In this document: in pieces, positions 35,521 through 60,523 of the stretch
Layout: every line of letters begins with the position of its first letter
How positions within the stretch are numbered: the first letter of the stretch is position 1
Assembly (NCBI GenBank): GCA_964036045.1
Contig: OZ038378.1
Span: forward strand, 98,952,001 to 99,016,000
Direction: 5' to 3'
Length of the DNA stretch: 64,000 nucleotides
Source: Eutreptiella sp. 'Long Island Sound 2002'
Taxonomy: Eukaryota; Protista; Euglenida
The notes under the pieces: model-generated
Told to the model about the DNA's origin: nothing
The model's input: the letters and a program-made list of their open reading frames with translations, nothing else
Database searches by the model: none
Program-made: the position numbers and the translations under genes

Positions 35521-36369
35521 GTTTCCGCTATTACTCACACGATGTTTAAATTCTGCAATTTAACCATAACCATTGGTTGTGGGTATTGGATATATTATGT
35601 TTCGCATGATGCATTTTGTTTACTCTACCGAATAATATGAATTCCAAGTTTGGCCTTAATTGCGCATATCGCTTTGAGGGCAACTTGTTTTTGGCATTCG
35701 CGTGAATGCTCGGACTTCTAGTAAGTTAATCCCAAGGTTTCGTTCGCGCGCTCCGAGCAGCTGGGGAACAACACCAATGATGAGTTGAAAAATCGGGTAA
35801 TGACCGCAAAACATCCAAATTCATTAACACCCTCTCGACTTACGCCGCCTTTGGTTGATCGCTGCCATCAATTTGTGCCTGCCATAATTCTACCCGTCTT
35901 TTTTGCTGAAATGCTTACGAAACAAGGCTTCAACGACAATCACATTTAAAGTCCATCCAACCCTGCTAGCACAGCCGGAATGAGAACGCTTGGGACGGCC
36001 TGAAGGATATCCTTTTTCGTCGCCAACTCCTTTGTTCAAATGGTCCAATGAGAAACGCAACGCCACTAGAAGCCCGTTGGAAACCGTGACCATCTCGCCG
36101 GAATGGACAATTGGTTACGATTCTTCTCGCTCAATGCCGTCGACTAAATGCCTTGAAAGTGTATTCCTCAACTGCTTTACCCCGCCTTTTGACATCTGGA
36201 GTGATGACATGACAAACTTGTTCGCCGTCACACGCTCTAATGGATGGTTTACAACGTCGGCACAAGTTCCTCTCAACATCATGGAAGACCTTCTAATGCT
36301 ACGCCTGACTTTTTTCCTACGCCCACCGTCACACAACACTTGGGATGAGAAAGCGCCAAAACACGTCCA

Positions 36370-37650
36370 CACGTGTGCGGAATTGTGCAAGCGCTCTACC
36401 ATACTCAATCAGGAGGCAATCAATCCAAAAGCCTTGTGTACTTTAAGTCTTTTGACGATGCCGCCACGCCTAGCACTCTATTTGCCACGCACACGAGACC
36501 CTTCGTTCAAACGCTCAAGCCCTTCAATTGTGGAGTCCACGTCCTTCATGGAGCTTCACCGACCAAGGTGGTTGACCGGGAAGTTATCACATGCCACTGA
36601 ACAAAGAATACTTGGATTCTACTTGAGCTCACCTGTTCTTGCCATCCAAGAGAAGAATGTGCCGATCACACATATGACTTCTGTCATCGGTCTGTTGCAT
36701 GGATGCTCTCACGAGCGGAAGCCGGCCCGGTATGAAATGCATTGGTTTCCTTCAAGGTTGACGTGCGGTGCGACTTGATGAATCAAGAAGCAAAGTCATG
36801 GCTACCTCCAACAACGCAACCGAAGGTTAAAGCCATTGGCCAGCTAGGCGATGTTCGTTCTTTCTAAAAGCACTTCCATCGATACTATTCCGGTGCAAAA
36901 GACTTCGCCACCGCGGACACCCAAAATAACTACTTTCCTCTTCAGGACTCCATTGCCAAAAAAGGCCCGTGCTCTGCCTATTACCGATACCATTACTCGT
37001 TGCTGCCCATCCTTGCGCAAGACTTCTACAAGTCCGTGTCATACCATGCGCTTTTCCTACGTGGTGATGTCCAAGTCATGCCATGCGACGACCTAAGTTG
37101 AGAATCCTCCTACTACGTTGTCTCAACTTGAGAAAAATTTCGCAAACACCCGGGTGAACACCTGCCGTGGGAGCTAGTTGGTACGCTTGTTGGCCAAACA
37201 AAATCCCTTGGAGTGCGGATCTCTTCCAGTCAAGTGCGAGGCAAGTTTGGCATCTTTTGTGGTCTTGACATCTCTAAAGTGATTTCCACGGGATATCTCT
37301 TCTCTTTGCAGACACTGACCCAGGCATTTTTTCAAAATGGAGACCTCTTGCTATTTTTGGTGAGGCAGAACCGCTTAGTTCGCTTTGCATCAGGACCTCA
37401 ATATGGCACGAGAGTTTGGAGGAGGGGTCAAACCGAGAAAGTAACTCCGTACGCGCATGCCGACCCGCACCGTTCAAAGCCAACCTATGAAGTAGCGGCC
37501 CTAGCGTCACTTTTGGGAACCATCGAATTTTCTGATGCCAAGCAACGATCTGGTTCTACCCGCACCTTTGAAGTCCGGTACACTGACAAAATTTCCGCGG
37601 TGTTGGCTATGGACTTCACGGCCCGGGACATTGTTTTCACCGCTGCTGTG
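36370..37650 (+). pseudogene. ORF1-like region with two RRM-like segments
   Basis: GIVQALYHTQ...KSLVYFKSFDDAA (~36375-36465) and LLGTIEFSD...FEVRYTDKISAVLAM (~37510-37610) resemble RRM beta2-RNP1-helix2. Confidence 0.4.
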
Positions 37651-37989
37651 CCCAACCCGCTACTGCGCAACCAACTTATTAACTCCATCTCTGAATTACT
37701 AAAAACTGATTGCTCGGAGCAAGATAAGGCTCTCGTTTCTTTCCTACAGGTTGGCTCCCCCTTAGGCGTATGTACAACTCCATCAACTGTGTCATGAAAT
37801 CCTCTGAAAAAGTCCGCAACTGGGTTGACTCCGAAGACATGCTGATTACGCCCGAACAGTACCTGGAACCTGGAATTCCTACGTTCCCGGGCATGGGTGA
37901 TGGTGCTCAATCCTCTGATGCAAAGGACCCCGCCAGTGCGTTTAAGGAAACCACACCTACTGTGCGTCCTATCTACGACGCGCAGGGGC

Positions 37990-38520
37990 GTTCACCGCCT
38001 CAAGGGCTCTTCTACTACCAAAACGTTTTACCTCAAGATTAGCAAACTCGTGTGCACAGACACTACTCTGGTCCAAGCATCCAATGGAGTCCCGGCAAAC
38101 AGCAAAAGGTGCAGTGGTATGGATGGCGCCACACACCAGATGGCAGCGTGCCAAGCGCTCCAATCCGGGAGCATGTCAACGCGGTGCTACAAGCAGTGGC
38201 AGCGTTACCGCTCCCAGACCACCTGAAAGGAGATTCTTTCGGCCAAGTCCTACAAACCGGATGGAGGGGTCTCACCCCATTTTGACTACGGGGACTACGA
38301 TGACCCCGTCATCATTGCATCAACTCTTTCAAAGACCTCTATGCGATTTGAAAATGGTGGCAGTACCTTTGAACTCTTGCTCAAGCCCAGGCTTTTGCTG
38401 ATTCTTACCGGAGATTCACGAACAAAGTTCTCACATGGCATCGAAATGCGTCAGCAAGACGACACACCTGCACGTGCCAAACCAAGGGAAGACTGCTCCA
38501 GTGTAACACTGCGCAATGTC
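37990..38520 (+). pseudogene. AlkB-family 2OG-Fe(II) dioxygenase domain (one stop, one frameshift)
   Basis: PQGLFYY; KVQWYG; GLTP-H-F-D (H 38278, D 38284); MRF; PRLLLILTGDSRTKFSHGI (H 38434); CSSVTLR (RxSxTxR with first R as TGC). Confidence 0.9.
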
Positions 38521-39003
38521 AAGAAACCTGCCCAGTCGCGTCCGTGACTCAAGCCACTGGAGTGCCCAACCTGCAGCGCTCCGTTTCCACTGCGGGAAGA
38601 CCAGCCATCCTCCAGCGTTTCGGTCTCTCGGAATTCGCTGCTCACACCCTTCGCCAACCTCGGTGCAAACCTCTACCAGCCCGGCTTTCATGAGACGTAC
38701 ATCGTCCATGAAGGCCTCCAAATGTCAAAGGTCACCGCGGGCCTCAGCTTGCAAAGTAACCGAACACCAGCCCAGGGCCAGGCAGTTTGCAAGCCGCACC
38801 CCCCATCCTCCTCATTCGCCGAGATGAACAGCCGCCCCTTGCCGAGAACGGCGCCTGCGGCGATGTGCTACTTTGACCAGGACTCCCCAACACCCTCCTC
38901 TCCCGTCTTGCCACAGTTACTACCACTACCACCCAAAGCTGCGCCAAAGCAGTCAAAAGGCTACCGCCAGTCTAAAGGTCTCTCAATAGTAGCACTGCAA
39001 CAT

Positions 39004-39700
39004 TCACTTCACATCCGAAGCCACAACATCCAAAAGGAACACCCAGGCGCCTTTGTGCCTCACCAGTTAAGCCAGGGAGTACGTGTACAACTCCTTCAAG
39101 AGCTCAACGAGCCTCCGAGGGCCGAAAATACACAGGCTTTTTGGAGGCCCCTCCATCAAGTATTTCTGCAACATCCCGAAGAACCAGAACAGCAACGGTA
39201 CGGGGATGGTTTTTTCGCCGGCCCTGGCCCCGTACGCCAAGCGGTATGCCCTGCATGACTCTGGAGCCTGGTTGTGTGCGGCAACACTCACCCTGCCCGG
39301 CTTGCCGTCAATTCTTTTCGTTTCCGTTCATGATCCACCTGATAAGGGCCCGGATGTTGAAGCGTTACTCTCTCTGATTTCGAGGTCCCATCCCCACTGT
39401 TTCCTTGGGCAAGACTTTAATGCAGTGTCTTGCCCACAGTTGGATCTCAGCCTCACCGACGACCCGCCCAGGCACTGGCTACGCCAGGCTACTGCATCCC
39501 CCCCACCGAGCCTGGTGGACACATTCCGCACTGTGAACCCAACATCACTGGCCTTCATTCGGTACAAGAGTTCCCACCCCCTCCTGGCATCCCCGACCCT
39601 CCTGACCCATGCCCTGCTACGTGACTCCTTCATTGACAGTGGTAACACTACTGCCGACCATGACTCAGTTTGTGCCATTTTGGACTTGCCCTCTCCAGCC
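39004..39700 (+). pseudogene. LINE-B AP endonuclease
   Basis: SLHIRSHNIQ (39004), LLQELN (39091), LGQDFNA (39404), DTFRTVNP, ADHDSV (39653); frameshift ~39250. Confidence 0.9.
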
Positions 39701-40359
39701 TGCCCCCGGGTCCCGTCCGAACGGTGTTCAGGTGCCTCAATGAAAAAAGAAAGATGAATTTGAGGCCAAAATACAGCCTTGGACTGCCGGGGGCTCTCAA
39801 AAGAAGCAAGCCCTCAAACGCCTTCCACTTGACTCCCTTGTTCCCATCTTTGATGTTTTTTTCACGGAAGTCACAGGTCACGTTCATAGCATCACGTCCC
39901 TATCGGCCCCCAATATTCCCAAAGCTTTCAAACATCTAGAGACCTTGCTCAAACAGCTTCCTCCCGCGGGGTCCCCCCACATTCAACGCAAATACGAAGA
40001 ATTTTGCAGTGAGTCGGCAAAAGCCAGGGCCACACATGAAAAATTGCGTCTGACCAGAGTCGGCAGAGCCTTGGTCCAACACCGTCAGTCCAAGCGCAGT
40101 TTTGCCCACTATTTGGAGGCGGACAAAGGCTCCGACATCAGCCTCCGCACGGATGCAGGAAACATCACGGCTGACCCTAAGAAGGTCGCCAAAATTCTGC
40201 GCAACACCCAACAATCTCTCGGCAATCACCCCCACTTCGTTCCTGACGAGGATTTTGTGGAGTCATTACTCTCCCGGATCATTAGCGCCCCTGCAGATGT
40301 CAAGCAGAAAAGAATCCCCAAAAATCAGCCTTGCTTGACTAGAGCACAATCTAAAGAAG

Positions 40360-41300
40360 GCACGCCCTGACAAGGCAGGGGGAGGTGACCGCACAAAATT
40401 TTACATTCTTCAGCTCCTTCTGTTTTCCTGTAAAGGGGCCCTGGTTTCCCTTACCAATAAACCAATACTTCAAGGTCTCCCGCAGCACTGGGCGCACGCT
40501 AGTTTACCCATGCTTTGAAGAAAGGGCAAACCCCACTCATCCTTAAACTACCGCCCCATTTCCCCCCTCAGCTCCTGTTACAGACTAACTGCCAAATGGC
40601 TACTTACCAGACTGAATGGGCTCACAACCGAATACAAACCAGTCCACCCATCCCAGATTGGAGGGCTCAAGTGCCGCCGCACTGTGGACCACATTTTCTC
40701 GGTCCTCAAAGCTCTCCAGGTACACCCCAACTCATACCACCTCTACATTGACTTTGAAAAAGCATTCAACAGCGTGGTCCGCCCCACGCTGTGGTGCCTG
40801 CTTGAACACTACAACCTGCCTGATGAGCTCATCCAGTGCCTCCGGCTGCTTTACCTCGACAGCGTGGACGCACCCCTTGTCGGGGGGGAAGACCCCTTTC
40901 GTTGCGCCCAGCACCGTGGTGTCTGTCAAGGGAGCCCCCTGTCCCCTCTGCTGTTCGTCTTATACTTGAATGCCTTGCTCTTCAACGCCCCCTTCCACCC
41001 CCCATCGATGATCTCACCAACACAGGACACACTTTCATTGATGACCTGTTATATCTCAGCCCAGACCAATCCCTCAGTCAAGGCCTCATAGATTTCTTTG
41101 ACACGGCCGGCCAAAAACTCGGCATGAACATGAATATGACCAAAACGGACGTCCAAGCCCTAAATGGAGCCGCCAAGCATGTTATCTCGTCGCTGTTCGG
41201 ATTTTATTTTGACACTGTGGACCCCATCACCGGTCCCCCCAGGGAAATTTATAAATACCTCGGGTTTTTTCTTTCACTAAGGACCACCCCCAGAAGTTGC
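40360..41300 (+). pseudogene. LINE-B reverse transcriptase
   Basis: NYRPIS (40546), YIDFEKAFNSV (40744), RGVCQGSPLSPLLF (40915), FIDD (41034); several frameshifts. Confidence 0.95.
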
Positions 41301-44300
41301 TCGCCCTCACCAAACGAGAAGTGTCCTCGTTTTTCCAGCGACCTCATCCCATCCCCTCACCCCTGCCTGAGTTGGTTTCCCTGGTGAATTGCCAGCTAGT
41401 CCCCATCCTCTGCTACCGCCTGATCGCCCGACGCCTTTCCTTGCAGCAGCTCCAAGCGTTGAAGCACCAGCTCTGGACTGCATTAGCCCGACAGGGCGGT
41501 GTTTCCACAAAGGTGTCACCCAAAGATCGCCCCCAAAGAAAGTCGAGATTTGGTCTGAATATCCATGACCTCACCTTTGGCATCCACAAGTTTGCGGTAG
41601 CCTCTGGCATCCCATTCCTCAACAGCGAAGGCCCGGACATCCCTTGTGGGGTCATGCAACAAGCTCTCCTCTCTCCTGACGCGAATTGGTTTGTTGACTC
41701 TTTTTGGGATTTCTGCAATGCCCTTGGTCTGGAGTACAACGGCCTACCATGGAACCGTCACCTTCTCCCTTCCTGAGGGCGGTCCCAGGATCCTGAGTTG
41801 CTACTCGCCGTACGAATTGTCTGAGGAATCTGAGGGGTGCGCAGTGTGGGTAGGACCTCAAAGGCTACTTCAGGACCCCCCCCCTCGAGGGTTTGTCTCT
41901 TGATAGATAACGACCAATTTCAATCCGATCTTGCCGAGTCCATTCGCCTGTCGCGGTCTACCCAGCCCCACTCCTCAGGGTCTCTGCATCTGGAATCGCG
42001 ATTCGTGAGCCTGCTGGACGCCCTGCCCTTGTCCACCCAAGTTCATTGCGCCGGGATCAAACACCCCGCTGGCCTTTCAGGGCAACGAAGTCAGCGACCA
42101 CTTCAGCAAGTCGGCAGCGTACGCGCTCCTCTGGCACAGAAACCTAACCCTGCCACCTCATCTGGGGTCTATCACGGTAAACAAACGCCCAATCCTTCGC
42201 TTCCCTTCTGCGGGCAAAATCAAAGCTCGTCTTCCCAAACAGGAACTTGCTGACTTCCACCTCACATTCAGCTCCGACTTCTATAAGCACTGCAGCTTCT
42301 TTTCTGCCTTTACTTTCAAATGAATCGCAGGAAACTTCTGCATGTCTACCTATGAACCACACTGGAGTTTGGCCCCGTACCTCTGCCCTGTCTACCTCTC
42401 TCCCGCTGGATCCAAGCACCTTCACCTCCCAGTCCGCTTCCATGGATCCGCTCCGTCAGCGTATGCTCCAGGCGTGCCCCCCCGCCTTCGATGCAATGAT
42501 CGCCGTCTGGTGGGAAACCCAAAATGTCATAAATGGCCGGCATTTCATTCCCACCCTGGTCTCCAATTCCCTGGCTGACATGCTCTCTACCCCCGCTGGT
42601 TGCAAACTGCCTGCCTGAACACAAGGAGGACCTCCGTCACGCCCTGGGGAAGCAATGACCAGCAGTCACCAACGTCCTCCGCGAAATCCCGCACCACCTC
42701 TGTGAGCACCCACTGCCTCTACCTCGCCCCCCCGCAGTGTTCCTCAACCCCTGGGGGGTCCTCCAGGCCGTCCATAGCACCACCAGGCACCCGCCCCCTA
42801 AATTCAGCCACCAGTACATCCCCCTCCCCCCCTCCAAGCATCTGTGTCCAGGAAACAAAATGCCAGCTAGAAAAAAGGACATCAACCTTCCAATTCCCCC
42901 ATCCAACCCGCGGGCAAAGGCCAGCGCGTCCGAAAAGTACCGCCAACACCGCCCCGCAACCGCCCTAACAATCCTGCGCGCAAAAAACCACCGTCCACCA
43001 AGACCCGTTTAATTTGTTTTTATTTTAGTCCACTACCCAAAATTAATGGGGTACCGCCCCACAGCAGTGACGAACCCCCCCCGACACTTGATCCCCTCTC
43101 CTACCTCTGACCCAAACTTTCAGCTGATTCTAGTCCATGCCCGTTTATGATTCAGTCCCTTCCTCGCTGTATATATCCAGACCAGGCGTTGAATTGTTTT
43201 CCCTGGACGATCTCAATGCCAGTGTTGGGCCTTCGCCGGGCCGTAAATGTTGCTGTGTTCAACGAAAACTTTTCGTAATTACCGTTACCTTATATTGTTC
43301 CTCAATTGGATTGCATTCGCAAAAAAAAGAAGAATTGGATGTTAAAGTATAGAAAACAGTAACAGTATGAGGGACTACTGACAGTGACGTTTGATTCAAT
43401 TACTGTGATTGAATGTTTGGCGAAAGACATGAATAAAAAAGGATCTTCATGACAGAAATGCTGTTTCGAAATGTTTGTCATGGTATACAGATGAACAGGG
43501 CTGATGGTACTGAGCTCACTGGTTGAAACAGAAACTTGCAGAAGAAGCGGTAAATCCTAATTTTGGAAGTCACCGACATGTCAGAGCTGAATTTGATAAA
43601 GTTATTTTCGTGCTGTAACATATATAATTGTATATAATGTTTGTTGTACAGATGGGTGTCTTCTTTGGTGAACTAAGAGAGCTCATTGGAATGCCCAGTA
43701 ACTTGGGCGGTCTTGTATTGATTTGCCCGTTGATCTTGCTGAATTCACTGCATCTGGCACGCCTGCCGCCCGTTCAACAACGCTTGCAGCCGGCAGAAAG
43801 GAACACCCTACTCCCTCATCGACCCCCTCTACACGGCACACCCCGGCCCTACCCAGCTGAGTCCCCCAGAGGGCTGGGCGTCCTGCCTGGACACCCACCT
43901 AGTTCCCCCCAGCAAAGCCACCGCCACACAGATGGACCCAGCGGACCAGCGCACCTACATCAGGGACCTCGAAACCTGCCTTAGAGAGGCACATCACTGG
44001 CACACCAACGCCCTGTCACCCCGAGAGGGGACAGGGGGCGCCACCTGCCCCCCGTGCCTGCAATGCCAGGAGTGCAGAAACAGGCAGAGGGGTCAGCCAA
44101 CGCCCGCGCTAACAGAGCGCCAAGCCACAACCGGTACTGAGGCCGAGCAAAACCGCACCACCAGACTTCAGAAGCCCCGGTGCACATAACCAACAACACG
44201 CTCTCCAACGCCCAGCACCACGACCGTACTGCGGCACCCGAGCCTTACGGCAACACCACACAGTCATGTGTACCACAGACACACCTACCACCACCACCAG

Positions 44301-45019
44301 CCCATGTCACCGTACCCGCAAGTGCCATGGTGCCAAACGCAACCGACAAACCCTCCCCACCACCATCACACGGCCCAGCACCACCTGCCGCCCCCACAGC
44401 ACAGGCCGACGATACTCCGGCCGCCATACGCCCCTAGGCCCACAAGGGCCATTCACGCACACTATCAACACCAAGGCCAGAACATGCCACAGTCCCCGAC
44501 TGACGGGGTGGCCAACCACCACCTTTCAGCCCCCCAGCCACAGCCTCTGCCCGCGAGCATCGCCCACCAACAACCGCCCACCGCCGGCAAAAGGCAGTTC
44601 CAGAAAGAACCCCAGGCGGCCATCACCCGCCTCGACACCGCGACCAACCACAGACTGCCTGATCCCCCGACGCACGCACACACGAACCACAGGAACCGGC
44701 AAAACACCCAGACACCCTACCTACAAAACTGGCAACCCCGCTCCCCCCCAAGCAGTGCCAGCCCCACACGCCCCCCCCCCTGCAATTCCTGAGCATCTAC
44801 TCACCGCACGGGGACACCCACCAGCTGCAACCACCCCCGCCCTCCACCGACGCTCTCGTCCGCGAACCCTCTCTCCCAGGACCACCAAGGGACACCGCAT
44901 CACCCCACCCCGCACACAGCAGCAGCGAACAGCCCCCCCTCCGCCCGCACCACAGCCCTTCAAACACGCCGCACCACCACCTTCCGCACCGGTTCAGGCT
45001 CCGACCACCTTTGCCCTCC

Positions 45020-46060
45020 ACAGGCCCCCCGTGGTACAGCAGCGCCTCCAGGCTGCGGACGGGCACCAGGAGGTGCTACGACTCCGCACTTTCTGGACCA
45101 TCCAGCCCATCTGGCTGGCCGCCCTTGTGCAGGGCGCCACCTCGGCCCAAGGCATCCGAGACTTCATCTTAGACGCCTTCCTCCACGTCGCCCGACAGGA
45201 GGGCGCCACTCTTGCCACCCCCAACAGCGAACGCCCGCTGCCCGAAAGGGGGGAGCACCTGAGTGCCCCCGTGTCCTGGGGGCGGCAACATGTCGGAGAC
45301 CTCCAAACAGCAGCGGGTAGCCACCACGGGCTGCAGCCGGTACTACGAGCCCAACATGGCCCAGACCCCACCCGACATCGCCGCAGCCAACACCATGGCA
45401 TGGCAGGGGAGGACTTGGGTCGACCGCGTGACCTACCTGAGCAACTTCGGGGACCAAGTCCACCCAAACATCCCCACCACCACCAACCGCCAGCGGGCCC
45501 CCTTCACGTACATGACCCTCATATACAACTGCGACTGCACCCTCTCCTCTAACCACTACCACGCCTCATCCGGCACTGGATGGTCGGCAGCACCGACTAC
45601 CTCCTCGCCGCCCACTACACTCCCCCCCCCCACACAACCCCAGCCCCGGCATATACAACAGAGTGGACAATCCCGACGACCCTCATATCTGTGGCACGTG
45701 GGGGCACAAGACCCTGAAGACGCTGCTCTCTATCCAAAGCGGCAACCAGGGCCTTCACAGGGCGATGTACTGCCTTGCAAAATGGGCCCAACCGTCCTGG
45801 CAGATCCTCGCCCTGCGATGGACGTGGAAGGTCACCGTCCACCTACAGCAGGAGGAGGCGCCCTCAAACTGCATGGAAACCACCACCCCGTGCCCCAGCT
45901 CCCTGTTACTCTGCCTGTTCATGGTGGCGGCCTGCCTCATGACCGTGCTGTGGCAGAAGGACACGGCAACTCAGCACTACCCCCACTTCAGGGGGGAGGA
46001 CATGCCCCGCATCCAGCGGAGCTTCTTTGAAACGGTTCCTCGCCTCCAGCAAACAGACCC
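45020..46060 (+). pseudogene. Ulp1/SENP (C48)-like cysteine peptidase domain
   Basis: GIRDFILDAFL (cf. WLNDExIxxYL), His/Asp region (NRHYTL...HGSDSL in the paralog at 30560-30630), LQQEEAPSNC, and FRGEDMPRIQR (cf. FxQxDMPxFR). Confidence 0.5.
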
Positions 46061-47124
46061 TGACGTCCTACAGCTAACATGGAACCCCCCCAGGTAGCTC
46101 ACCAACGCGCGCATCCAAGATAACTCCACAACCACACCACACACGACACATGACGGGGCCCACAGCACCGGTACGTGCGCGCACACAGCACACCACCGAA
46201 AGCGCGCACACACTGCCACACCCTGACCCTCCTTGCCCACTGGACCCAGATGGCGGCACCAGAGCCAGAGCCCGCACCCCCGTCCCCCACATCCATCTCC
46301 TCCGTCTCACCGTCCTCGCCATTCTACCTCTCGGGCTCCTCCACCAGCGCCTCTCGCCCAGATTCCCCGATCATCACCACCACAACCATCTTGTCCACTT
46401 CGACCACCACAATAACTCCCAGCACCCCAGCCCCCAGACCGCGGGCAACACCACCCACACAAGCCCCAAAACCTGTTCCCGCTGCCAGCGCACCCAGCGC
46501 CTCCAAGGCCACCGCAGCCCCGCGACCCGCTACTGGCAAAGCGGGGCTGCAACGCACCCGGGCGATGCCCCACCTGCAACCCAGCTAAAGTTCAGACCCC
46601 CCCGGAAAACCAAAACCCAAAGCCAAGCCGCCACCCAAGCCCACCGCCAAGCACCAATCCGAACCAAACACCACATCACAGGCCCAACCCACCGCCAAAC
46701 GCGGCGCCAACCCTGCTGCCAAGACCCAGCCTCTCAGAGAACTCCTCTACGACCTCCGTACCCTGCAACCAAGGGCCTGGCAGCAGCAACGCCTGGCACA
46801 ACGTCCCCCCGCCATCACCAATGCCGCTGCCACCACCCTCATGGCGGAACGCGCCATGGCACAGGCGCGACGCGCCTCATCCCCACGCCACCCAGAACAC
46901 GCAGCCCGGACACACAAACCACCCCTTCTAGCCGGGGCTGGAGAAACACCAAGGGCAGCCAGTGGCGCCCGCACTCCCATACCAGCCCCCGGTGTCTGCC
47001 CATGTCTAGCAGATGCCCCGCTACCGCCGCAGCCACAGACCCTAACCCGACGCCTAGGCAGAGTCGTTACACACACACAACACAGGAAACCCCCACCCGC
47101 GGAAACACCCACCGCCGCGGCCCG

Positions 47125-47435
47125 CGGACCCCAGCCAGGAGTGGCGGGGAGCCGCCCCCGAGACCCACAGCCAGGAGTGGAAGGGGCCCAACCAACACCG
47201 CCACAAGCGGACCCCCGAGCCAGGAGTGGCGGGGAACCGCGACTGGGACCCGCAGCCACGAGTGGCAAGCGACTACACACCACCGCCGCCAGCGGACCCC
47301 AGCCAGGAGTGGCGCGGAACCGTACCCGGGGCCCTCAGCCAGGAGTGGCGAGGAGCACCCACCGCCGCCTAACAGCGAAACCCAGCCAGGAGTGGCGGGA
47401 AATCGCACTCAGGAACCTCGGCCAGGAGTGGCGAG
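47125..47435 (+). repeat. CAGCCAGGAGTGGCG minisatellite, ~83-84-bp dimer
   Basis: Eight cores at about 47131, 47167, 47215, 47251, 47298, 47335, 47381 and 47418, with alternating ~36/~47-bp spacing as at 205-1010. Confidence 0.9.
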
Positions 47436-48759
47436 GGGCCAACCACGGCACACACCAACCACACCCACACCCACACCAGCAGCAAGCCCCAGCTGGCCCC
47501 AGCCACACACCCACACACACACACACACACACACCAACACACACGGAAGACACACCCACACCCACGCCACCACGAACGCACGACACACACACCAGCACGG
47601 ACACCACGCGCGCACGCACCTTGCCACAAACACACACAACGGCGGCGAATCACAACCAGGGGAGGTGGGGACAGGCACACAAGCAACATGGCCAGAAAAA
47701 GCGAAAAGCGCCCCCTACTGCCACCACCCCTTCCGGGAGAGATGGGAAACCCACCACCACAAACCACACAGCGAAAAGGGGGGCGGGACAAAAAGGGCCC
47801 ACGGGAGACGCAGGCGAGAGACGCAACCTCAGGGGTTTGGGGGCCCCCCCGGTGACTGTATCGGCCCCATCTGAGCCTACGCATTAGGGTGGGATACGCC
47901 TGGGACCGTTGGTCAGCGGCCCGCGGTGGCAACGGCCTTGGGGGGTGACCAATGGGCCTGACCAAGAGCACTCCCCACGGCACATACTGCGGTTTGGGCC
48001 CAGCGAGGGGCTGCGGGTAGGGCACACCGTCCATCGGGGCAGGCAAGAGACACGCCTATCCCGCAAGGACTCCCCTGCGACCCACAGTGTACCCGACCCT
48101 GGTGTGGGGAACGGCTGGAGTACCTGGCTACGGAGCAGGTCCATTTGTACCGAGCGGGTACAAATGAACGGCCCGTACAACAGAGTTACACCCTGACGGG
48201 GAGTGCAAGCATCGGCCCCCCCAAGGGGAAACACCAGGGGAAGGGACCTGAGCCGACGACAAGGACCCCCCCCCCAACCACCACAGCCGGGAAAGGCCCG
48301 GGCACGGCACGAGGGGAACACCGACCCAAGCGACGCGGCAAGAGACAGAGGGTGGAGGGTACTCAAAGGGGGCGGCGGGGGGACACACCACCAACAGACC
48401 CCAGCCAGGGGGGGCGGGGAACCACACCCAGACCCCACAGCCGAGACGGGAGAGGGGCCACGACACACAGCCCCCACACCCACACAGAGCCGCCAAACCA
48501 AGCCCGGAAAGGCGAGGACAGGCACCCAAATGCACCACCACTACACCGCACACACGCCCGCGCATGCACACAACACACACCGCCACAGCCGCCAGCGACA
48601 CAAGCCCCACAAACGCACACCACACACCTAAGCGCCAGCACCGCCCGCACCACAAACGCACAAAACACACGAAAACCCAAAGATCAAGAACCCAGCAACC
48701 CCCCGCAAGGGGAGCTGCAGGGCCGCCAGAAACACCGCTAGGACACAAAGGTAGACCCA

Positions 48760-51700
48760 CCAAGCCCTCAGCCAGGGGTGGCGAGCGCGCACACCCAGCA
48801 ACACCCAACCAACCACACCCAAACCCAGGACCAGTAACTGCGACACCCACACCTGCACCGCCACCAACACCCAAACCGGACGCCACAACACCCTCACCAG
48901 CAGAAACACCCGGAACCAACGGAAACACTGTCGGCAACACCAGCGACCCCAGCACCCAGCACAACACCTGAGACACCCTCACCAACGTCAAACCAACACA
49001 AGAAGCCACCCAACACTGACCAACGCCCGCACCCGCGCCACCCACCGACCCGCACCCAGAACCACCGCCACCAGCCTCCACACCATCGGAAACACCAACA
49101 CCACCAACAATCAAGCCAGCACAACACCCTCACCAACACCATCACCGCCGGCACCATCGCCTACGAAACCTACGCACATCAACACCGGATACAACACCTA
49201 TATCACCCAAGCCAACGGCATCAAACACACCATCGCCAGCATCATCCCACCATCAGCGTCGCCACCGGCAACCTCCGCCACCAGAGGAAACCAAAGCCAC
49301 TACAACCGGTGAACCAACAAACCACCAAGCCCCGGCCAGAGGAGGCGAGGACACACGCCCAGAACCATCAACAACAACGCCCTCGCCACCAAAGCAACCA
49401 CAGGGTGCCATCCACAACGCAGTCACCAGCGGCACCCACATTACTGGCGCCACCAACACCACCCTCACCCACGACACCAACCGGGACATCGCCTGTACCA
49501 CCCTCACCAACAGCATCACCAGCAGCCCACACCACCTACCGCACACCCTCCCAGACAGAGCCACAGAAACCAGCCACCGCCCACACCAGAACACAGGCCA
49601 CTGACCACCCACACACAGACCCACACCAACCACAAGCAGCATCAGCAACATCAGAGACGCCGTAAACCATAGCAACGCCCGCAACGACCTCACCACCGGC
49701 ATCAGCGACAGCACCACCGACGGTGCGACCTCAGCAACAACAACCCAGAGCGTCAACGACAGCCACCACGGCGACACCACCAGGTACAACACCATGGACA
49801 TCAACGACACCAAGGGGGCCAACACGCCGGCCAGCAACGCCCATGGGAACCTCCGCCAGGAGTGGCGAGGTCCCACCCCCACCGTCAGAACACCACCGTC
49901 CACCAGGGCATCATCTACAACGCCCTCGCCTTCGACATCACCCACAGCTCTGCCAGCGGCGCCCTCACCAACACCGTCACCAGCACCACCGACAGCGGCA
50001 ACACAGCGACACCGCCAACCACCCACAGCACCAACCTACCACTACAGACCCAAAGACAGCCGGAGGAAATACCCCAACACCAGAGACAACCAGCACCACC
50101 CCACCAGGAGCACAAGCCGACCAACCACCAGCCACGAGTGGCACGCCCGGAACCGCCGACCGCCCAAACGCAGGCCGCGCCCAGCACCAACACCAACAAC
50201 ACCCACGCCATCAGACGACCACGAGACATGCCAACCACCAAGTATCACCTATGACAACCCCACTGTCGGCAACACCAGCGTCGCCAACCCCCATGGCACT
50301 ATCCACACCACCACCAACCCCACCAACGACGTGCCAAGGTGCCGTAACCTACAACACCCCTACCACCACTACCACGACCCCGGCACCGAGTAGCACCTAG
50401 GGCGCCCCCACCATCGGCGGCACCAAAGAACACGGCATCACAAACAAACGCCACCAGCGCTACCGACCAAGCCCTCAGCCAGGAGTGGGGAGCGCCCACA
50501 CCCAGCAACACACAACCAACCACGCCCAAACCCCAGGACCAGTGACTGCGACACCCACACCTGCACCGCCATCAACATCCAAACCGAACGCCACAACACC
50601 CTCACCAGCGGAAACACCCGGAACCAACGGAGACGCCGTCGGCAACACCAGCAACCCCAGCTCCCAGCACGACAACTGAGACACCCTCACCAACATCGAA
50701 CCAACACAAGAAACCACGCAAAGACCATGTTACACCCAAGGCATTACACCCGCGCCACGCACCGACCCGCACCCAGAACCACCACCGACAGCATCCACAC
50801 CATCAGAAACACCAACTACACCAACAATCAAGCCAACACAACACCCTGACCATCACCATCACCGGCGGCACCGCCGTCTCCACCATCGCCTACGATACCT
50901 ACGCACGCCAACACCGGATACAACGCCTACATCACCCAAGCCAACAGCATCAGACACACCATTCCCAGCATCACCCCACCATCAGCGTCGCCACCGGCAA
51001 TCTCTGCCACCAGAGGAAACCAAAGCCAACACAACCGGTGAACCAACAACCCACCAAGCCCCGGCCAGAGGAGGCGAAGACACACACCCAGAACCATCAA
51101 CAACAACACCCTCGCCATCAAAACCAACCACAGGGCGCCATCCACCACGCAGTCACCAGCGGCACCCACACCACCGGTGCCACCAACACCACCCTCGCCC
51201 ACGACGCCACCCGGGGCATCGCCTGCACCACCCTCACCAACAGCATCACCAGCAGCTCACGCCACCTACTGCACACCCTCCCAGACAGAGCCACAGGAAC
51301 CAGCCAGCGCCCACCCCAGAACACAGGCCACTGACACCGACACACAGACCCACACCAACCACCAGCAGCATCAAGAACATCAGAGACGCCGTAAACCATA
51401 GCAACGCCCGCAAAAACCTCTCCACCGGCATCATCGACGGTACCACCGACAGGGCGACCTCACCAACAGCAACCCGAAGCGTCAACGACAGCCACCACGG
51501 CGACACCACCCGGTACGACACCATCGGCAACAACGACACCGAGGGGGCCAGGGCCAACACACCGGCCAGCAACGCCCATGGGAACCTCCGCCAGGAGTGG
51601 CGAGGTCCCGCCCCCACCGTCAGAACACCACCATCCACCAGGGCATCACCTGCAATGCCCTACAACGCCAACACCCACAGCTCCCCCGGCGGCGCCCTCA

Positions 51701-52190
51701 CCAACACCGTCACCAGCACCACCGACAGCGGCAACACGGCGACACCGCCACCCACCCACAGCATCGACATCCTCGACCACAACCGATGCAACACCTACCA
51801 CTACAGACCCAAGGACAGCCGAATGAAATAACCCAACACTAGAGACAACCGGCACCACGGGGACCACAAGCCGGCCAAACACCAGCCACGAGTGGCACGC
51901 TCGAACACGCCGACCACCCAAACGCAGGCGGCGCCCAGCACAAACACCAACAACACCAACGCCATCAGACCACCACGAGACACGCCAACCACCATCGTGA
52001 CACCTTCACTGTCGGCAACACCAACGCCGCCAACACTGACGGCACTATCCACACCACCACCAACCCCACCCACAGCGTGCCGAGGTGCAGTCACCTACAA
52101 CACCCCTACCACCACCACCACGACCCCGGCACAGAGTAACACGTAGGGCGCCCCCACTGATTGCATCACCAAAGACGCCAGCACGGCTGG
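48760..52190 (+). repeat. Two diverged tandem copies of a ~1.7-kb Thr-rich unit
   Basis: Units start CAAGCCCTCAGCCAGG at ~48761 and ~50468 and end near TAGGGCGCCCCCA at ~50398 and ~52145; collinear throughout. Confidence 0.9.
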
Positions 52191-54129
52191 TGAACAAACC
52201 CAACCAGTGCCACCCATCAGGCCCCAAGCCAGGGGTAGCAACAGCAACAGCACACACTGGCACGCCCACCGCATCCACATCAACCGGAGCATCGTCAACA
52301 TCACCCAGGGGTCCCCACCACCCAAGCAGCACAAAAAACCGCAGCAACACCACCACATCCACCACCTCCACCACCAGCGACACCAGCGGCACCCTCTGCC
52401 AGGAATGGCGAGGAGAAAACCCAACATTGCGGAGCCACCCAGCGTCCCCGGCACCCTCACCATCGGAGCGCACCACCGGCACCAACCCTCAACGCACCAC
52501 CGTCACCGTCACCAACGCCACCGACCCCTGACACAACAACCACACAGCCCGCGTCAGCGGCACCAGCAGAACAGTCACCGACACCACTTGCACCAACCTC
52601 ACTAGCAACAAGACCTGGTTAACCACCTACGACCACGAACCGCAGGCACTAACAACCAGAGCATCGCCGACAACACTCCTGGCCAACACCCGCACCGCCC
52701 TCAAGAACACCACCGAAAGCAGCACCGTCGACCGATAGCCACAACACCCTCACAAACCACCTGGATACGGGTCCCCCTTCCCACCCCCCCCCCCCACGAA
52801 CAACAACGGCATCGCCCACAGCCCCCACCATCTGCACAAGCAGCGACACCATCACCAGCACCAACCGGAACATCGACGACGGCAGCCTCACCAACAACCA
52901 GCACCCCCACTACCACTGCCACCAGCGCCACCACCACCAGTCACGCCACCGTCCGTCGGCGCCACCCACCAACGCCGCACCCTAAACCACACCTACACCC
53001 AAGACCTGCAGCAACACCAGCGGACACCCCATTAGCGACATCACCCTCCACCAGAAGACGATGATCAGCACCAGCAGGAAAGCCAGCCCTTAGCGCCCAA
53101 AACAGCCTAAAGACCTCCCACAGCCGGACCCACACGCACCAGCAGCGCCTACGCCGACCCACCATCAGTGTCACCGACACCTGGAAAGACACAAACCTCG
53201 ATGAACTAACGACCACAACACTGCCGCCACTGCACCCACACCATCAGCATCACTGCCAGAACAGCCATGGCACCACCTGCACTCACCAGCGCCACCACCA
53301 CCCCGCGCGAGGCCAGGAACCCCTGGCATCGCGAACGGCCTCAACAAACATCGACACCACCAACACCACCACCGCCGGACGGGGACTACCCACAAACCAA
53401 GAACAGCTCCACCACCAACAACCAATACACCACCAGCGGCACCCCACCGTCGCCAATACCACCCTCACCACCACGGCACCTATCACACCTCCACCACCGG
53501 CGGTGACGTGGGCCACACCACCCGTCATCTACAGCACCCTTGCCACCATCGCCACGTCCGGCCCACAAGCGTTACGCAGCAACGGCCAGAGACAACACCC
53601 TCACCATCGACACCACCGGCAACGTCACATGCGCTGCATACGTCACCCTCGCCATGCTCACCAACCATCACCCTCACCATCAGTGTCCACAACATCAGAG
53701 GCACCAACACCACCAGCGACGACGACAGCGACAACAGCTGACCCACCAACTAACCACCATCAACTAGCCCAGCACCCACCTCATCTACGCTAACGCCCAT
53801 ACCACCCTCGCCAACGCCAGCGCCAGCGGCACAATCATCCACTCTGGGACCCAAACCACCCTCACCACCAACATCACCACCACCCCCCTAGGGTCAGGGC
53901 TCGCGGGGAACGGAACGGCAGAGCGAGCACGCCACCACCCGCACGCGTCGCCCACCCTATCGTACACCGCTCCGCAACACGCCCCCCTGCTTCCCCTGAC
54001 AGGACGTGCGCTGCAGCCCACTGCTGGGACGACGACTATGACGTCCTTCCGGCCATCCGACACCTACTGGCAGCCACGGCCCCGCGCCCACAAGCCCACC
54101 AGCAACCCACGGAACCGCAGGAGCCCGAC

Positions 54130-55810
54130 CACCCCATGCCACCACGCTCCATATTCCCCGCCCTATCCATCCAGCAAGCCCAGACCTAGACCCCACACCG
54201 CAACACCCAACGAGGCTACACCATTTCGTGGGCATACCAAGACCACGGCATCCTCACCCCCCAACCATGGCCCCCCCCATCCAGACACCAACACAACCGC
54301 CCTCCTCCAAGTCGCTCCAACGGCAGCCACACAGGTAGGGGCCCCGGAAACCTGGGGCCCACAATACCTGGTCAAAACCAAAGTGGAGCCCCACACGAAG
54401 GCCCAAGAAAAGCCCCCAACACCGAAGGCGCTCCACCCCCCACTCAAGCTGGACGCGACTGAACACACCCCCCAGGTCGAATGGGCGACCCACTACATCA
54501 TCCCCCACACCACCGACCGCAAGAACGACGCAGCCAAGATCACTGTCACCCGCCACCTCCCCCACACCACACGGGTGTATGAGCTGATGGTCCCCAACGT
54601 CCTCGTCACCCGTCGCAGACACGAGGAGCCATACACCATACAGGCGGAAGGGGCCGCAGCGGCCACCCTGTACACATGGGCAACACGGGGGGACCTCCCA
54701 CACCCCATCCTCCACCACGCCCCCTCCTGGCCCACCCCCTTCCACACAGCGGACCGCCCCAACAAGAAGCCCAAACACACAGGTATGCACACCCCGCGCC
54801 CAGGAGGGCCAGCACCGACACGATGCGAGGCGCAAGGCCCGCACCCTCCACGAGGACCACATCATCCCCCGCATCAGCGCCCCCCCTGCCAGAGTGTCAG
54901 ATGCCACCCACAACCGCACGATCACAGGCATCATCACGGACTGCCTGAGCCCAGCGGCGTCGCGGGCAGATGCCGTGTGGATCAGCGAAGGGCGCTCCCA
55001 CACACGGGCGGTGGCGCGCCTCCACAACATCCAGGCCCACAAACTCCAGCGCGCCGTCGCACCCTTCGCCGTACACGTCACCCCGTAGGGCATCGACCAC
55101 CCCCGGTGTGAGCACCTTGACCCGCCCTGATCCACCCCATGCACCTCGCCACTGCGCCAACCGCTGCCGGCCCCCACCATCATGGGCAACATGTACCTGG
55201 GCACCGTACCGGGAGACCCGAGCATATACATCCTGCCCAACAGGTCCAGGGAACACGCCATGCCCCTCCACGGAGTAGAATCCCTCGCCCTGGGACCGCA
55301 CCCACCAAAACACCAACAGCAGCACATCCCGGGGTACAAACGGACGCAGGCGCCAGACGGGGGAGAAGAGGCCCACAAACGCGCCCTAGCCCACATCACC
55401 GTCAACCCCGCAGCCCACTGCTGGGTCCTCCACTTGGCACACGGAGTCCTGATGGCAGCCCAGGCCTCTACCCCGGAAAGAGACCCGGAAGACCCCCCAC
55501 GGGGCCGCCAGCAACTCTTCCAGGCCACCACCCTCACAGGCCGCGAAGGCGCCCCGTGGGAAGCCCTCCACACAGCACTCTACTGGGCTCAAGGCTCCCC
55601 AAATGGCCTGGACACACCGGAACCCACAGAGGCCTGGGTCATGCAGGCCAAGGCGATGAGGAACTACCACCTTCACCACCCCTTTGACGACAGCCCGGCC
55701 GCACTGCCATGGCCATCCAATCCCCCAGAGACCGTGCGCAAGCTCGCCGACCTCATGTGCAGCCACGCGAAAGCGAAAACATGCAAACGCCGGCAGAACA
55801 CCCACTAAGA
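54130..55810 (+). pseudogene. Conserved unassigned coding block of LINE-A (copy 2)
   Basis: Homologous to 5450-7290; includes the 208-codon ORF 55182-55808. Confidence 0.6.
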
Positions 55811-56104
55811 TATCCGGGCCAGCAAGCAACGCACCCCTTCTTCAAACCCCACGCCCCCCCAGCCCCGCTACCTCCAGTCCCGCCCAAGCGAGCGAGACGA
55901 AAAAGGGGCGCACCCGCCCCCAACCAAGCCAGAAAAGCAGCGACCTCCCGACCCCCCGCACCCCACCCGACCCACCCAGGCAAACCCGGACCAAGCATCC
56001 TCGTCATCCTCCCTCCCATCATTACCACCGCCCCAGCCGGACCAGGCATCCTCCTCATCCTCCCTCTCGCCACCAGCACCGCCCCCGCCCGAGGCGTACG
56101 CAGG

Positions 56105-56250
56105 ATTTGAAAAGGGCGCGAAGGTCCAGCTGCCCTTCTGCAACGACCACACGGGCGACTGGATCTGGTGTGAGGGCACAATCCAGTACCGCCTCCGCCA
56201 CCTGGGGGACAACGGGGGGCCACAGATCCGGGTGGTCACTGCCAAAAGGA
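56105..56250 (+). pseudogene. Tudor/Agenet-like domain upstream of APE (copy 2)
   Basis: FEKGAKVQLPF...GDWIWCEGTIQY...QIRVV. Confidence 0.5.
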
Positions 56251-56499
56251 GCTACACCAAGGCAGTAGCGCCCCGGACAAGCCAGAAGGCCACACCCTGT
56301 AGTTCACCAGCGCCCACCCCATCCGGCTCCGCACTGACGAGAGCAAGGCCAACAGAGGCACCAAATACACTGGGAAGCTCCCCCCGGAGTGGACCCAAGG
56401 CCTCCCCACGCCGCGCCTAGCCAAGCGCCCACCAACCGGCAAAAGGTCCCCGACCCCCGGTACCCCTCCCTGACGGGGCAAGGGCCGAGGGCACAAGCC

Positions 56500-57250
56500 T
56501 CCACAGCCCCGGCCCACCCCCACCGAGGCCACCGTCAACCTCCCCGACCTCAACCACCCGGCCGTCACATACTCCAAGGATGCCACAACCGCCCTCCAGG
56601 AGCTCCCGATGGCACAGGGGCCGGGGTGGGTTCCCCACCTCCTCGCCTTCCAGGAACAAGGCCAATAATGCGACGACCTCCCAGAAACCACCCCCATATA
56701 TACCCCGGACCGGAAAGCGTACAAATGCTACTGGCACAAGGGGACCCCCCTGTACACCCGAACCGGCATCCACGTCCACCTCGGCCACTACCTTAGCATC
56801 CCAAGGAGGCTAGGTGTCTATGAGGTTGTCGGGGACGGATGGCAACTCAACGTCATCAACGTCAAAGTCCCCTTCGGCGACGTCACAGAACCCTTCCTCC
56901 AAGCCCTAGCCGAGGCATACCGCCAGATGGCCATGCTCGCCCCCACAATCATCATGGGCGACATGAATGCCGCCCCCACCCCGGCAGACTGAGGGGGACA
57001 GGCCACAGCCCAGAACCATGCAGTCCGCGACACCATCGAAATGCTGGGGCTCGTGGAATTGACAGCCAACCTCGAAGGCCAACCATCCCACTTCCCCAAC
57101 CAAACACATGCCGCCCCATCCCGCATCGACGTATGCTATGGCGACCCCACCACCATCATCCGGGCGGAGGCCAGATATGGAACCCTCCCGCTGGGACCCA
57201 CAGGCCATAGCCCCCTGCACATCCGCCTCACCATCCCCAACCTTTCCCCA
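56500..57250 (+). pseudogene. LINE-A AP endonuclease (copy 2)
   Basis: LNVINVKVP, IIMGDMNAA (~56950), SRIDVCY, TGHSPL; TGA at ~56990 where the other copies have CGC (Arg). Confidence 0.9.
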
Positions 57251-57849
57251 AGCCCCCAAGAGGATGCAGACCAAGGCCTACCACCCCCCCTGAAGATGCC
57301 CCCACTGCATGACAAACAGGTCTGGTCCCTATATCACAGGGCCAAAGACCGCGCCCTATTCCCAGCCATGCGCACAGCCGGCGTCGCCTGCGGCTTCCAG
57401 CAACACCCCCACACTGACGACGACCAACCACCCACGGCCCTAGGGGACATGCTCCATGACCTCTGGCATGCGAAGCAACAACTGGCGAACCTCCTCCACA
57501 CCGACACCCCCCAAACCCGCCGCCAGATACACCACTGCAGGACGCGGATAGCCCACATCAGGGCAGACCTGCAGCGGTGGCACATCCACAGGCAACAGCG
57601 CCTCGCCCAGGAACACGGGCGGTATGCGCAACATGAACTCCCCTACAAGGCCATCTGCCACCTCAACGACGCCATGACCGACACCGGCCACCGCACCATC
57701 ACCACAGTCCGGCAGGAGGACGACTTCCTCACCAACGACCCAGCCACAGTGCACCAAGCCACCCAAGACAGCTTCCTCCGGCAACACACGCCCACCCAAG
57801 ACACACTGGACGCGGACACCCAGGCAAAAATTAACCGCCTGACTCGGGT

Positions 57850-59000
57850 CTTCAACCACGCCCGGAGGAGGCAACTGGAAAAGCGCCCCTTCACCATCCA
57901 CGAAGTCTGGAAGGGCATCCACAGTCTCTGGCAACACAAAACCCCAGGCTACGACGGCCTCCCTGCAGAGGCATACTACCACCTCCCCGCACACCTTCTC
58001 TGCATCCTCGTTCACCGCCTCTGGGACATCATCACGGAGCAGACCCCCCTGCCGACAGACTGGGCAAACGCTGTCCGCCCCCTCTACAAAAAAGGGGACT
58101 GGGCAAACCCGGACAACTGGCACCCCATAGTCTGTGCAGTCACGGAGGTCAAAATAGACTGGACCATCCTCCTACGCCGCATCCGCCCCCACCTGGACCC
58201 CCACATACCAGCCAGCCTCTGGGGGGCCATCCCAGGCCGGACCCCACACGAGGCCATCTTCCCCCAGGACGACATCGCCGACATGGACCCGGTAGACCTC
58301 ATCATCGCCTCCCTCGACGTCAAAGGAGCCTTCCCGAACACCCCCTGGCTCTTTCTAGAAGCGGTGTGCACACGCCTAGGCCTCCCCTTCTACAACTTCG
58401 CCTCCGGCTACATCCGCAGCCGCAAATACACGGTCCGCACCGGAGCAGGCCTCACCCCCTTCCTGGAGCCAGGCAGCGGGGTTCCCGAAGGAGGAGCAGA
58501 AGGCCTCTCGTGACGCTCCCCCTGGCCCTCGCAATCGAGCAAGATTACCCGGCCTACGCACCCTACCCCCTCCTCTCCCTCCTGGTGGGCTTTGCGGACG
58601 ACACCAACCTCACGGTCGCACACACCCCACACGGACCCCATTCCCCGGACCCCGGGCCAACTGTCACCCAACAGGCCAATGACTTACTGGACGTGACTGT
58701 CTCCTACCTCTGCCAGAACAACCTCATCGTCCACCCCACAAAGTCAGTGGCCATGATCAAGGAGTCTGCCACACCCCCCACCCTAGGGCCAAAAGGGCCC
58801 CCCATGCAAGTCGTGACAACCACCACCCACCTGGGGGTAATCCAGGCCGCCAACCCTGAGGACGCCACCCTCCCTCCCAAGTTGCAATCACAGCTCGCCC
58901 ATCTCCCCAGATATGCTTCCCCGACCACCAAGGCCCTCTCCCTGTCCCACCACAGCCTGGCGTACTACCTCACCGGGGTCTTGAACGCCTCCATAGGCTT
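57850..59000 (+). pseudogene. LINE-A reverse transcriptase (copy 2)
   Basis: KTPGYDG (57938), PLYKKGDW, SLDVKGAF (~58310), GVPEGG (~58480), FADD (58591); small deletion/frameshift ~58510. Confidence 0.95.
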
Positions 59001-59929: not shown

Positions 59930-59995
59930 TGTTGGTCCTGTGAGCCCGAGGCACCAACCACACCATGGCCCGTACTACACCTCATAGCACGCCAC
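59930..59995 (+). other. C2H2-like zinc finger between RT and RNase H
   Basis: CWSC-x12-H-x4-H read directly from 59930-59995. Confidence 0.6.
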
Positions 59996-60523
59996 CACAC
60001 CCACCTCACAACCCACCTACCATCACAGGCCTAAGCATGGGTATCCCCATGCCTCCACCGCATCGACACCAGCCCCACGGTAGCGTGGAACCCCGACCAT
60101 GCGCCCAAATGGCTCTCCACCACTACACCCACCTGGCCCCGCCCCGACCCGGCAGGGCTCGCCATCCGTTAGAGCATGTACGAACCAGGCAGAACGGGCA
60201 AGCACGAGCACCCCTACTATCCCCTCCACCACTCCTGCCACACACCGGTGCACCGAACACAAACTCTCACATGCCACGACCTAAACCCAGACACAGCCTA
60301 CATCCTCCACTACATCTACTCCTATCTCACACAAGGACAGCCGGAACAGGGACTCATAGCCATGTCCCCCCAAGCGAAACACGTCATCTCCAAAGGAATA
60401 GGGGTGTATGCCAACCCCGTCCTGCAGCCCACAACCCCAGTAGCCCACCTCACCACGGGCTTCGCCATATACGCCTACCTGCCCATGAACGCATGCGGCC
60501 TCCCACAACCATCACCGGCGGAC

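Follow-up and report, generated by a model that had tools for sequence, protein, structure and literature searches.

Evidence that the first open reading frame of an old Eutreptiella LINE ends in an AlkB-type dioxygenase domain

Introduction

Retroelements rarely fix extra enzymes, and an extra enzyme kept by such an element points to a host barrier that the element must overcome. One enzyme found in selfish replicators is AlkB, a 2-oxoglutarate (2OG)- and Fe(II)-dependent dioxygenase, which is present in the replicases of plant flexi- and closteroviruses and is presumed to rid the viral RNA of methyl lesions or marks. In Phalaenopsis orchids, Ty3/Gypsy (Ogre/Tat-like) elements carry an open reading frame (ORF) for an AlkB protein (2-oxoglutarate-dependent dioxygenase, 2-ODD) that showed RNA binding and N6-methyladenine (m6A) demethylase activity in vitro and that was proposed to help the element counter epitranscriptomic control (PMC9289625). 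Here, we analyzed a stretch of 64,000 nucleotides from the euglenid Eutreptiella sp. 'Long Island Sound 2002' (GenBank assembly GCA_964036045.1, contig OZ038378.1, positions 98,952,001 to 99,016,000 of the forward strand), hereafter called the window, in which an AlkB-type domain lies within a decayed long interspersed nuclear element (LINE), a retrotransposon without long terminal repeats (non-LTR retrotransposon). We conclude that the ancestral element was, very probably, an old bicistronic LINE. Its ORF1 (~909 amino acids [aa], ATG at 35911 to TGA at 38545) would end in AlkB, and its ORF2, encoding an apurinic/apyrimidinic endonuclease (APE) and a reverse transcriptase (RT), would start at an ATGA overlap in the −1 frame, so that a putative RNA-binding core would hold the dioxygenase on the ribonucleoprotein.

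The orchid elements are likewise retrotransposons with a fixed AlkB in a protein separate from the polymerase. However, they are LTR elements of land plants, they carry the enzyme in an extra ORF, and their domain was described as close to m6A demethylases, whereas the element studied here is a non-LTR element that appears to carry AlkB at the C terminus of ORF1, with ALKBH8, Ofd2, ALKBH7, and ALKBH6 as its nearest matches. The plant viruses, too, are selfish RNA-templated replicators with an AlkB of their own, but the viral domain is placed inside a replicase polyprotein, whereas here it resides on a predicted RNA-coating protein and a conserved stop precedes the replicase.

The ORF1 proteins of LINEs are modular RNA-binding proteins with RNA recognition motif (RRM) modules, and an esterase-type ORF1 protein is encoded by CR1/L2-like elements (PMC3905857, PMC4120745). 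Such an esterase-type protein is likewise an enzyme-bearing ORF1 product, but the enzyme here would be a 2OG-Fe(II) dioxygenase, joined to a core with a predicted RRM-like fold. Viral helicase domains have been captured by ORF2 of insect LINEs (PMC5563155). As to the arrangement of the two ORFs, those of SART1 overlap in a UAAUG stop-start according to Kojima et al. 2005, as cited in PMC3894237. Both SART1 and the present element have an overlapping stop and start and lack an intergenic spacer, which implies coupled translation, a putative mechanism for the present element, whose overlap reads AUGA with ORF2 in the −1 frame. A full-text literature search found no paper reporting AlkB in a LINE or a 2OG-Fe(II) dioxygenase in ORF1; the one prior report of AlkB in retrotransposons that we found concerns LTR elements (PMC9289625).

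Results

AlkB is an integral part of an old LINE

The element in the window is a decayed full-length copy of ~7.5 kb at positions 35734..43280 (+ strand, as are all features of the element given below), and its bounds were judged from the common ends of the copies. When the 2.28-Gb genome was searched at the DNA level with window positions 37950-38560, 26 matches of 74 to 86% identity were obtained on contigs C1, C2, C3, and C18; the flanks of 15 places were then merged, oriented, and mapped onto the window (individual copies are designated cA, cB, and so on). The genome holds at least 19 copies of the element, with a mean pairwise Kimura two-parameter distance of 0.18 among copies. Homology begins exactly at 35734 in five other copies and stops at 43258-43268 in three, and a short A-rich tail follows the common 3′ end. 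Some copies are full length from 35734, others are 5′-truncated, and none carries LTRs; overall, the element measures ~7.5 to 8 kb. The family is old, and the window copy is a dead relic.

The AlkB-type 2OG-Fe(II) dioxygenase domain, assigned by Pfam family PF13532 (2OG-FeII_Oxy_2) and by profile matches to the PDB, occupies positions 37990..38544 at the C-terminal end of ORF1. The motifs that the original prediction had read in this region were all confirmed in one frame, namely, HFD at 38278-38286, the distal His at 38434-38436, and S-V-T-L-R at 38500-38514. A profile search bore out the assignment, with PF13532 matching window positions 38227-38544 (E = 7.5e-5, 23.5 bits, profile positions 102-185). 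This score is below the curated cut-off of 31.2 bits because only half a domain is matched, the two halves of AlkB lying in different window frames owing to a private 11-base deletion at ~38249. The window domain is also interrupted by a private TAG at 38040, where the other copies aligned have TGG. Two copies exceeded the cut-off, cJ with 52.6 bits (E = 8.6e-14) and cI with 37.2 bits. The iron ligands HxD...H are present in the window, in most copies, and in P0021 and P0023, two metagenomic proteins described below. The 2-oxoglutarate motif RxxxxxR reads R-L-S-V-T-L-R in cJ, cE, and cS and occurs as a variant in cI; in the window and in cG, Cys replaces its first Arg, a change suggestive of CpG decay.

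We found AlkB flanked by one constant 5′ part and one constant APE-RT part in every copy spanning the region, and this indicated that the domain is integral to the element, as had been proposed from the window alone. The tie between AlkB and the LINE was also seen at five more diverged loci, where AlkB precedes RT by ~2.0 kb in the same orientation, with 39 to 76% identity to this family in AlkB and 51 to 73% in RT. That AlkB and RT have stayed together through so much divergence speaks for selection on the element. A host AlkB pseudogene that is merely adjacent to, or carried by, one LINE copy would have nothing in its favor beyond the oddity of the domain, and it is hardly conceivable: all copies, spread over four contigs, share both flanking junctions; the spacing from AlkB to RT is kept at loci whose RT is only 51 to 61% identical; and an open frame in cA runs from the ORF1 core into AlkB.

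ORF1 and ORF2 overlap at a conserved stop-start

ORF1 of the window is broken by private stops and by private deletions of 14, 6, 13, 21, 28, and 11 bases (35974-38253). To infer the ancestral frames, we combined statistics for each copy with unaltered stop-free pieces, the net length difference of each copy from the window being taken in 40-base bins. After correction for these offsets, the whole of 35734-38547 falls into one ancestral frame. The first in-frame ATG common to the six full-length copies is at 35911; it leaves a 5′ untranslated part at 35734..35910 and an ORF1 remnant at 35911..38547, which amounts to 909 codons when the 93 deleted bases are added to the window length. Stop-free pieces tile ORF1 in this frame (294 aa from the ATG in cD, 302 aa in cM, 577 aa in cA, 408 aa in cI, and 121 aa in cJ), and the single 577-aa open piece of cA extends from mid-ORF1 through the start of AlkB to just before HxD. 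The aligned pieces make up 921 columns, with AlkB in the last ~190 residues.

The junction alignment of 14 copies placed the ORF1 stop over the ORF2 start at 38544..38547, ancestrally ATGA and GTGA in the window. TGA at 38545-38547 is conserved in 14/14 sequences (window included), and CCATGAC, in which the ATG overlaps the stop, in 11 of them; CTG takes the place of the ATG in two copies and GTG in the window. Offset correction brought APE, RT, and the rest of ORF2 into another single frame, which is −1 relative to ORF1 and is the frame of the ATG in ATGA. When the AlkB frame is followed past the TGA, a stop common to most copies is met 61 codons on (window 38733), whereas the ATG frame contains no stop common to most copies up to APE. 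The latter frame is open for 180 codons in cC, 148 in cE, 150 in cG, 144 in cI, 154 in cK, and 204 in cL, and in four of these six copies (cC, cG, cI, and cL) the frame after the TGA closes at codon 61. Read from its ATG, cL enters the Pro-rich stretch that precedes SLHIRSHNIQ in the window.

These data bear on the central proposal of the original prediction, in which a single frame was followed from AlkB across the TGA and a CPTC motif into the APE domain and an AlkB-APE-RT polyprotein was suggested. Its reading of the window was accurate, since the TGA, the stop-free frame (38548-39255), and the motifs SLHIRSHNIQ and LLQELN (~39000-39100) are all present. The continuity is not ancestral, however. 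Compared with most copies, the window shows a gain of 2 bases at ~38678, a loss of 19 at ~38803, and a gain of 1 at ~39126, with more indels further downstream; its open frame crosses all three ancestral frames and owes its continuity to these three private indels and to T-poor sequence in which stops are rare. CPTC is found at 38563-38574, but it is private to the window, most copies reading C-A-T-R, and it lies outside the ancestral ORF2 frame.

A single polyprotein, with TGA 38545 explained as decay or as a read-through codon, would agree with the window frame being open on both sides of the TGA (38227-39255). It is nevertheless very improbable. The codon is TGA, not a sense codon, in all 14 copies; read-through would meet the stop 61 codons on in the majority of them; APE and RT are in the −1 frame once the private +2, −19, and +1 indels are allowed for; and the AlkB frames of intact relatives, at ~980 to 1120 aa, are too short for APE plus RT. 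The copies hold, between AlkB and APE, both a conserved stop (14/14) and a separate overlapping start in the −1 frame (11/14), an arrangement that the original prediction had itself set against its polyprotein. The gene model is thus corrected to two ORFs overlapping at ATGA.

A gag-pol-like arrangement was considered as well, in which −1 slippage before the TGA would yield some ORF1-AlkB::APE-RT fusion and AlkB would be covalently attached to the replicase. The −1 frame of ORF2, which in copies is open for at least 70 to 91 bases upstream of the ATG, would suit such a mechanism. Yet a search of the final ~105 bases of ORF1 in all 14 copies found no canonical −1 slippery heptamer (X XXY YYZ) in frame, and the ATG is kept exactly at the overlap, which would be needless for a frameshift site, so that we regard slippage as improbable. 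The conserved stop-start overlap and the −1 frame instead argue that the two proteins are made separately. In this bicistronic arrangement, ORF2 would most likely be translated by termination-reinitiation, or from another internal start, at the ATGA overlap, as at the UAAUG of SART1.

The ORF1 core is related to a protein with a predicted RRM-like fold

To characterize the rest of ORF1, we searched its profile against 1.84 billion representative proteins. The matches comprised fragments of this family and, from two unrelated metagenomes, the intact proteins P0021 (1158 aa) and P0023 (1025 aa), whose C-terminal ~600 residues align with the ORF1 core plus AlkB and whose AlkB parts both pass Pfam. 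A homologue search with the 577-aa piece of cA returned only proteins of another assembly, apparently of the same species, and one with the core-plus-AlkB alignment returned only P0023 itself. The core, at window positions 36850..37760, was delimited by BLASTP and tblastn: cA is 24% identical to P0023 over 474 aa (E = 5e-21, BLASTP), and P0021 matches window positions 36817-37767 (E = 2.7e-14, tblastn).

P0023:395-860 was modelled with AlphaFold from an alignment that included pieces of this family, and the model contains two alpha/beta modules with predicted local distance difference test (pLDDT) values of 85 to 96. Almost all of the top 50 Foldseek matches to this model are RRM proteins, mostly with tandem modules (probability up to 0.99, E values from 3e-4). 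VIA-align superposed model residues 213-294 on an RRM of IMP3 over 77 residues (Z = 8.6, root mean square deviation 3.3 Å), and hundreds of RRMs gave Z ≥ 5. The RRM-like module predicted in this relative would correspond to window positions ~37480-37700. No Pfam family, RRM_1 included, matches the ORF1 core, and a 0.82 lead from the core to an RRM cluster in the ESM Atlas was not counted as evidence. By homology with the RRM-like relative, we hold with moderate confidence that ORF1 encodes a predicted RNA-binding protein.

On the contigs of P0021 and P0023, the core-plus-AlkB gene is followed by frames of 531 and 552 codons (L043 3694-5286 and L044 3458-5113, respectively), which run off the contig ends. 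The downstream frame of L043 overlaps the core-plus-AlkB stop (ATGAGTAA). Neither frame has a Pfam match, and they show no similarity to each other or to the ORF2 of this element.

The AlkB domain and its possible substrates

A profile of the copies was compared with all PDB chains. The matches were ALKBH8 (E = 2e-7), Ofd2 (fission yeast SPAP8A3.02c), ALKBH7, and ALKBH6, with E values of 2e-7 to 1e-4, and Escherichia coli AlkB, ALKBH2/3, ALKBH5, and FTO gave no match up to an E value of 10. The AlkB part of P0023 matched the same PDB set and, in addition, a DNA N6-methyladenine (6mA) demethylase (E = 6e-4). The best-scoring solved relative, ALKBH8 (RRM plus AlkB plus methyltransferase; PDB 3thp), has an RRM next to AlkB, as is predicted for the ORF1 protein, but the match covers the AlkB core only. 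ALKBH8 also carries a methyltransferase domain and acts in the cell on the wobble uridine of tRNA. In an AlkB-domain tree (FastTree, 122 sequences, unlabelled), this family was placed with P0024, P0028, P0043, and P0117, apart from P0021 and P0023; with deep supports of 0.43 to 0.83 and long branches, the tree does not separate a single capture of the domain from repeated captures. A weak match to an OTU-like cysteine protease (E = 1.5e-4), joined to AlkB, was observed in P0032, a 556-aa metagenome protein from the Joint Genome Institute. The pairing of an OTU protease with AlkB occurs in the replicases of some plant RNA viruses.

Action on 6mA in DNA is known for NMAD-1/ALKBH4-type enzymes and action on tRNA for ALKBH8, and protein substrates have been proposed for ALKBH4, ALKBH7, and Ofd2. 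For the bicistronic LINE we envisage that the ORF1 protein would bind the element's own RNA in cis via its RRM-like modules and that the ORF1 coat would hold the dioxygenase on the element's ribonucleoprotein. There the enzyme could oxidize a base modification on element RNA, nascent cDNA, or target DNA; such marks might otherwise block RT or expose the RNA to the host. The most likely job of the domain, to which we give slightly less than even credence, would be to remove or alter, by oxidation, base modifications on the RNA template, cDNA, or target DNA, and removal of N1-methyladenine (m1A), N3-methylcytosine (m3C), or m6A in particular would be a hypothesis within it.

The domain might otherwise act on DNA (cDNA or target, e.g., 6mA), on a tRNA-like substrate, or on a protein, or it might only bind. 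The identity of the four best solved matches speaks for such a role, as do the DNA 6mA demethylase found with P0023 and the failure of E. coli AlkB, ALKBH2/3, ALKBH5, and FTO to match even at an E value of 10. On the other side stand its fusion to a core with a predicted RRM-like fold and the binding of LINE ORF1 proteins to their own RNA (PMC3894237); a purely structural role is further opposed by the retention of the catalytic residues in P0021, P0023, and most copies. On balance, we consider these other activities unlikely, though far from negligible.

Several observations weigh against a LINE that carries a working AlkB enzyme on an RNA-binding ORF1 protein. All copies found of this family contain stops or frameshifts, none being intact, and no RNA sequencing run was found to contain the stretch. 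None of the nearest solved AlkB proteins is a classical m1A/m3C or m6A demethylase, and the substrates of some may be proteins. The RRM-like fold was modelled on P0023, a relative of only 24% identity, and the Z score of 8.6 is only moderate. Finally, neither APE nor RT occurs in the 1.6 kb downstream on the contigs of P0021 and P0023, which may be cellular genes rather than LINE proteins.

If a LINE indeed joins AlkB to its RNA-coating protein, this would suggest that retrotransposition in this organism is affected by base methylation of the RNA template. The methylation could be a host mark or a block to reverse transcription, and the element would carry its own eraser. This would have parallels in the plant RNA viruses and the orchid LTR element, although the class of element and the protein concerned both differ.

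Abundant relatives in the genome keep the core and AlkB

The family is accompanied by many relatives in the same genome. Searches with the C-terminal half of AlkB gave 1,314 candidates, those with the ORF1 core alone 1,661, and those with P0023:400-1025 1,984. Of the last, all 70 places that were scored (70/70) are collinear over residues 3-609 and lie in single stop-free frames of 865 to 1122 aa that coincide with the AlkB matches. Examples of this abundant young family are G000:C26:4091701-4093452 (+), C5:159465323-159467074 (−), and C16:1156626-1158377 (−). Its uninterrupted frames measure ~977 to 1122 aa, and it is 26% identical to P0023 and ~37% identical to the AlkB of the family described here. 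A younger, abundant family with intact frames therefore keeps the predicted core-plus-AlkB protein, at a length too short to include APE-RT.

One locus links an open AlkB frame with an open RT frame, and it is the only one found to do so. At G000:C2:6412703-6413032 (+), an AlkB match of 30% identity lies in a 783-aa open frame, and at C2:6416398-6416865 (+), 3.4 kb downstream, an RT match of 46% identity lies in a separate open frame of 1569 aa. This locus looks like a third lineage. AlkB matches similar to it were observed at C9:27060350, C14:26718843, and C15:25004950.

The LINE with its own AlkB thus extends to thousands of candidate loci in the genome. We tentatively propose that a superfamily of algal LINEs, old and young, encodes an RNA-binding ORF1 protein with an active AlkB that edits the element's own RNA or cDNA and that has been kept while RT diverged to ~45 to 60% identity; our credence in this proposal, made from sequence comparison, falls somewhat below even. 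An active AlkB that edits its own RNA or cDNA would be the first nucleic-acid-modifying oxygenase known from a non-LTR retrotransposon. Related copies with uninterrupted frames of ~1000 aa make the idea testable with natural sequences.

ORF2 domains and surroundings of the element

The ORF2 remnant extends over 38544..43100, as judged from the ATG frame and the offsets, with its 3′ end within ~43000-43150. It comprises a Pro/Ser-rich N-terminal stretch, APE, RT, and a C-terminal part. The APE domain was assigned to 38990..39754 from Pfam matches and from motifs recognized by eye; PF03372 matched cF with E = 3.4e-4 and 20.9 bits (below the cut-off of 24.5), and PF14529 matched cQ with E = 0.026. 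The RT domain at 40519..41384 was detected in the window itself by PF00078 (RVT_1), at 40519-41088 (E = 8.8e-16, 58.7 bits) and 40827-41384 (E = 0.012). A possible RNase H-like part at 41600..42250 was recognized by eye from YTDGS-, E-, and D-containing motifs in copies, and no RNase H family of Pfam matched ORF2 even at an E value of 10. The first of these motifs (YTDGS...) lie in a segment of ~470 bases that is present in cB, cE, cH, and cJ and is missing from the window copy at 41754/41755.

Upstream of 35734, the six full-length 5′ ends share no common sequence; the spliced-leader sequences tried gave no match in the window, and Rfam gave no match in it. A run of A (e.g., AAAAA, TTAAAAA) was observed directly at the 5′ junction in 4/6 full-length copies (window 35700-35734 and the flanks of cA, cB, cN, and cR were inspected), which hints at an A-rich target site.

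Two further observations concern sequence organization. At L021-L023 (G000:C3:74683734-74688815), a segment matching window positions 38410-39280, which contain the end of AlkB, the ATGA, and the start of ORF2, is present as three head-to-tail repeats with a period of ~966 bases, and this triple repeat adjoins an element's 5′ end (35734-36575). The base composition to either side of the LINE, at window positions 1-32000 and 44000-64000, is extreme and strand-biased (GC content 0.58 to 0.66, GC skew to −0.38, AT skew to +0.67), and this gives rise to long stop-free frames rich in Pro, Thr, and His.

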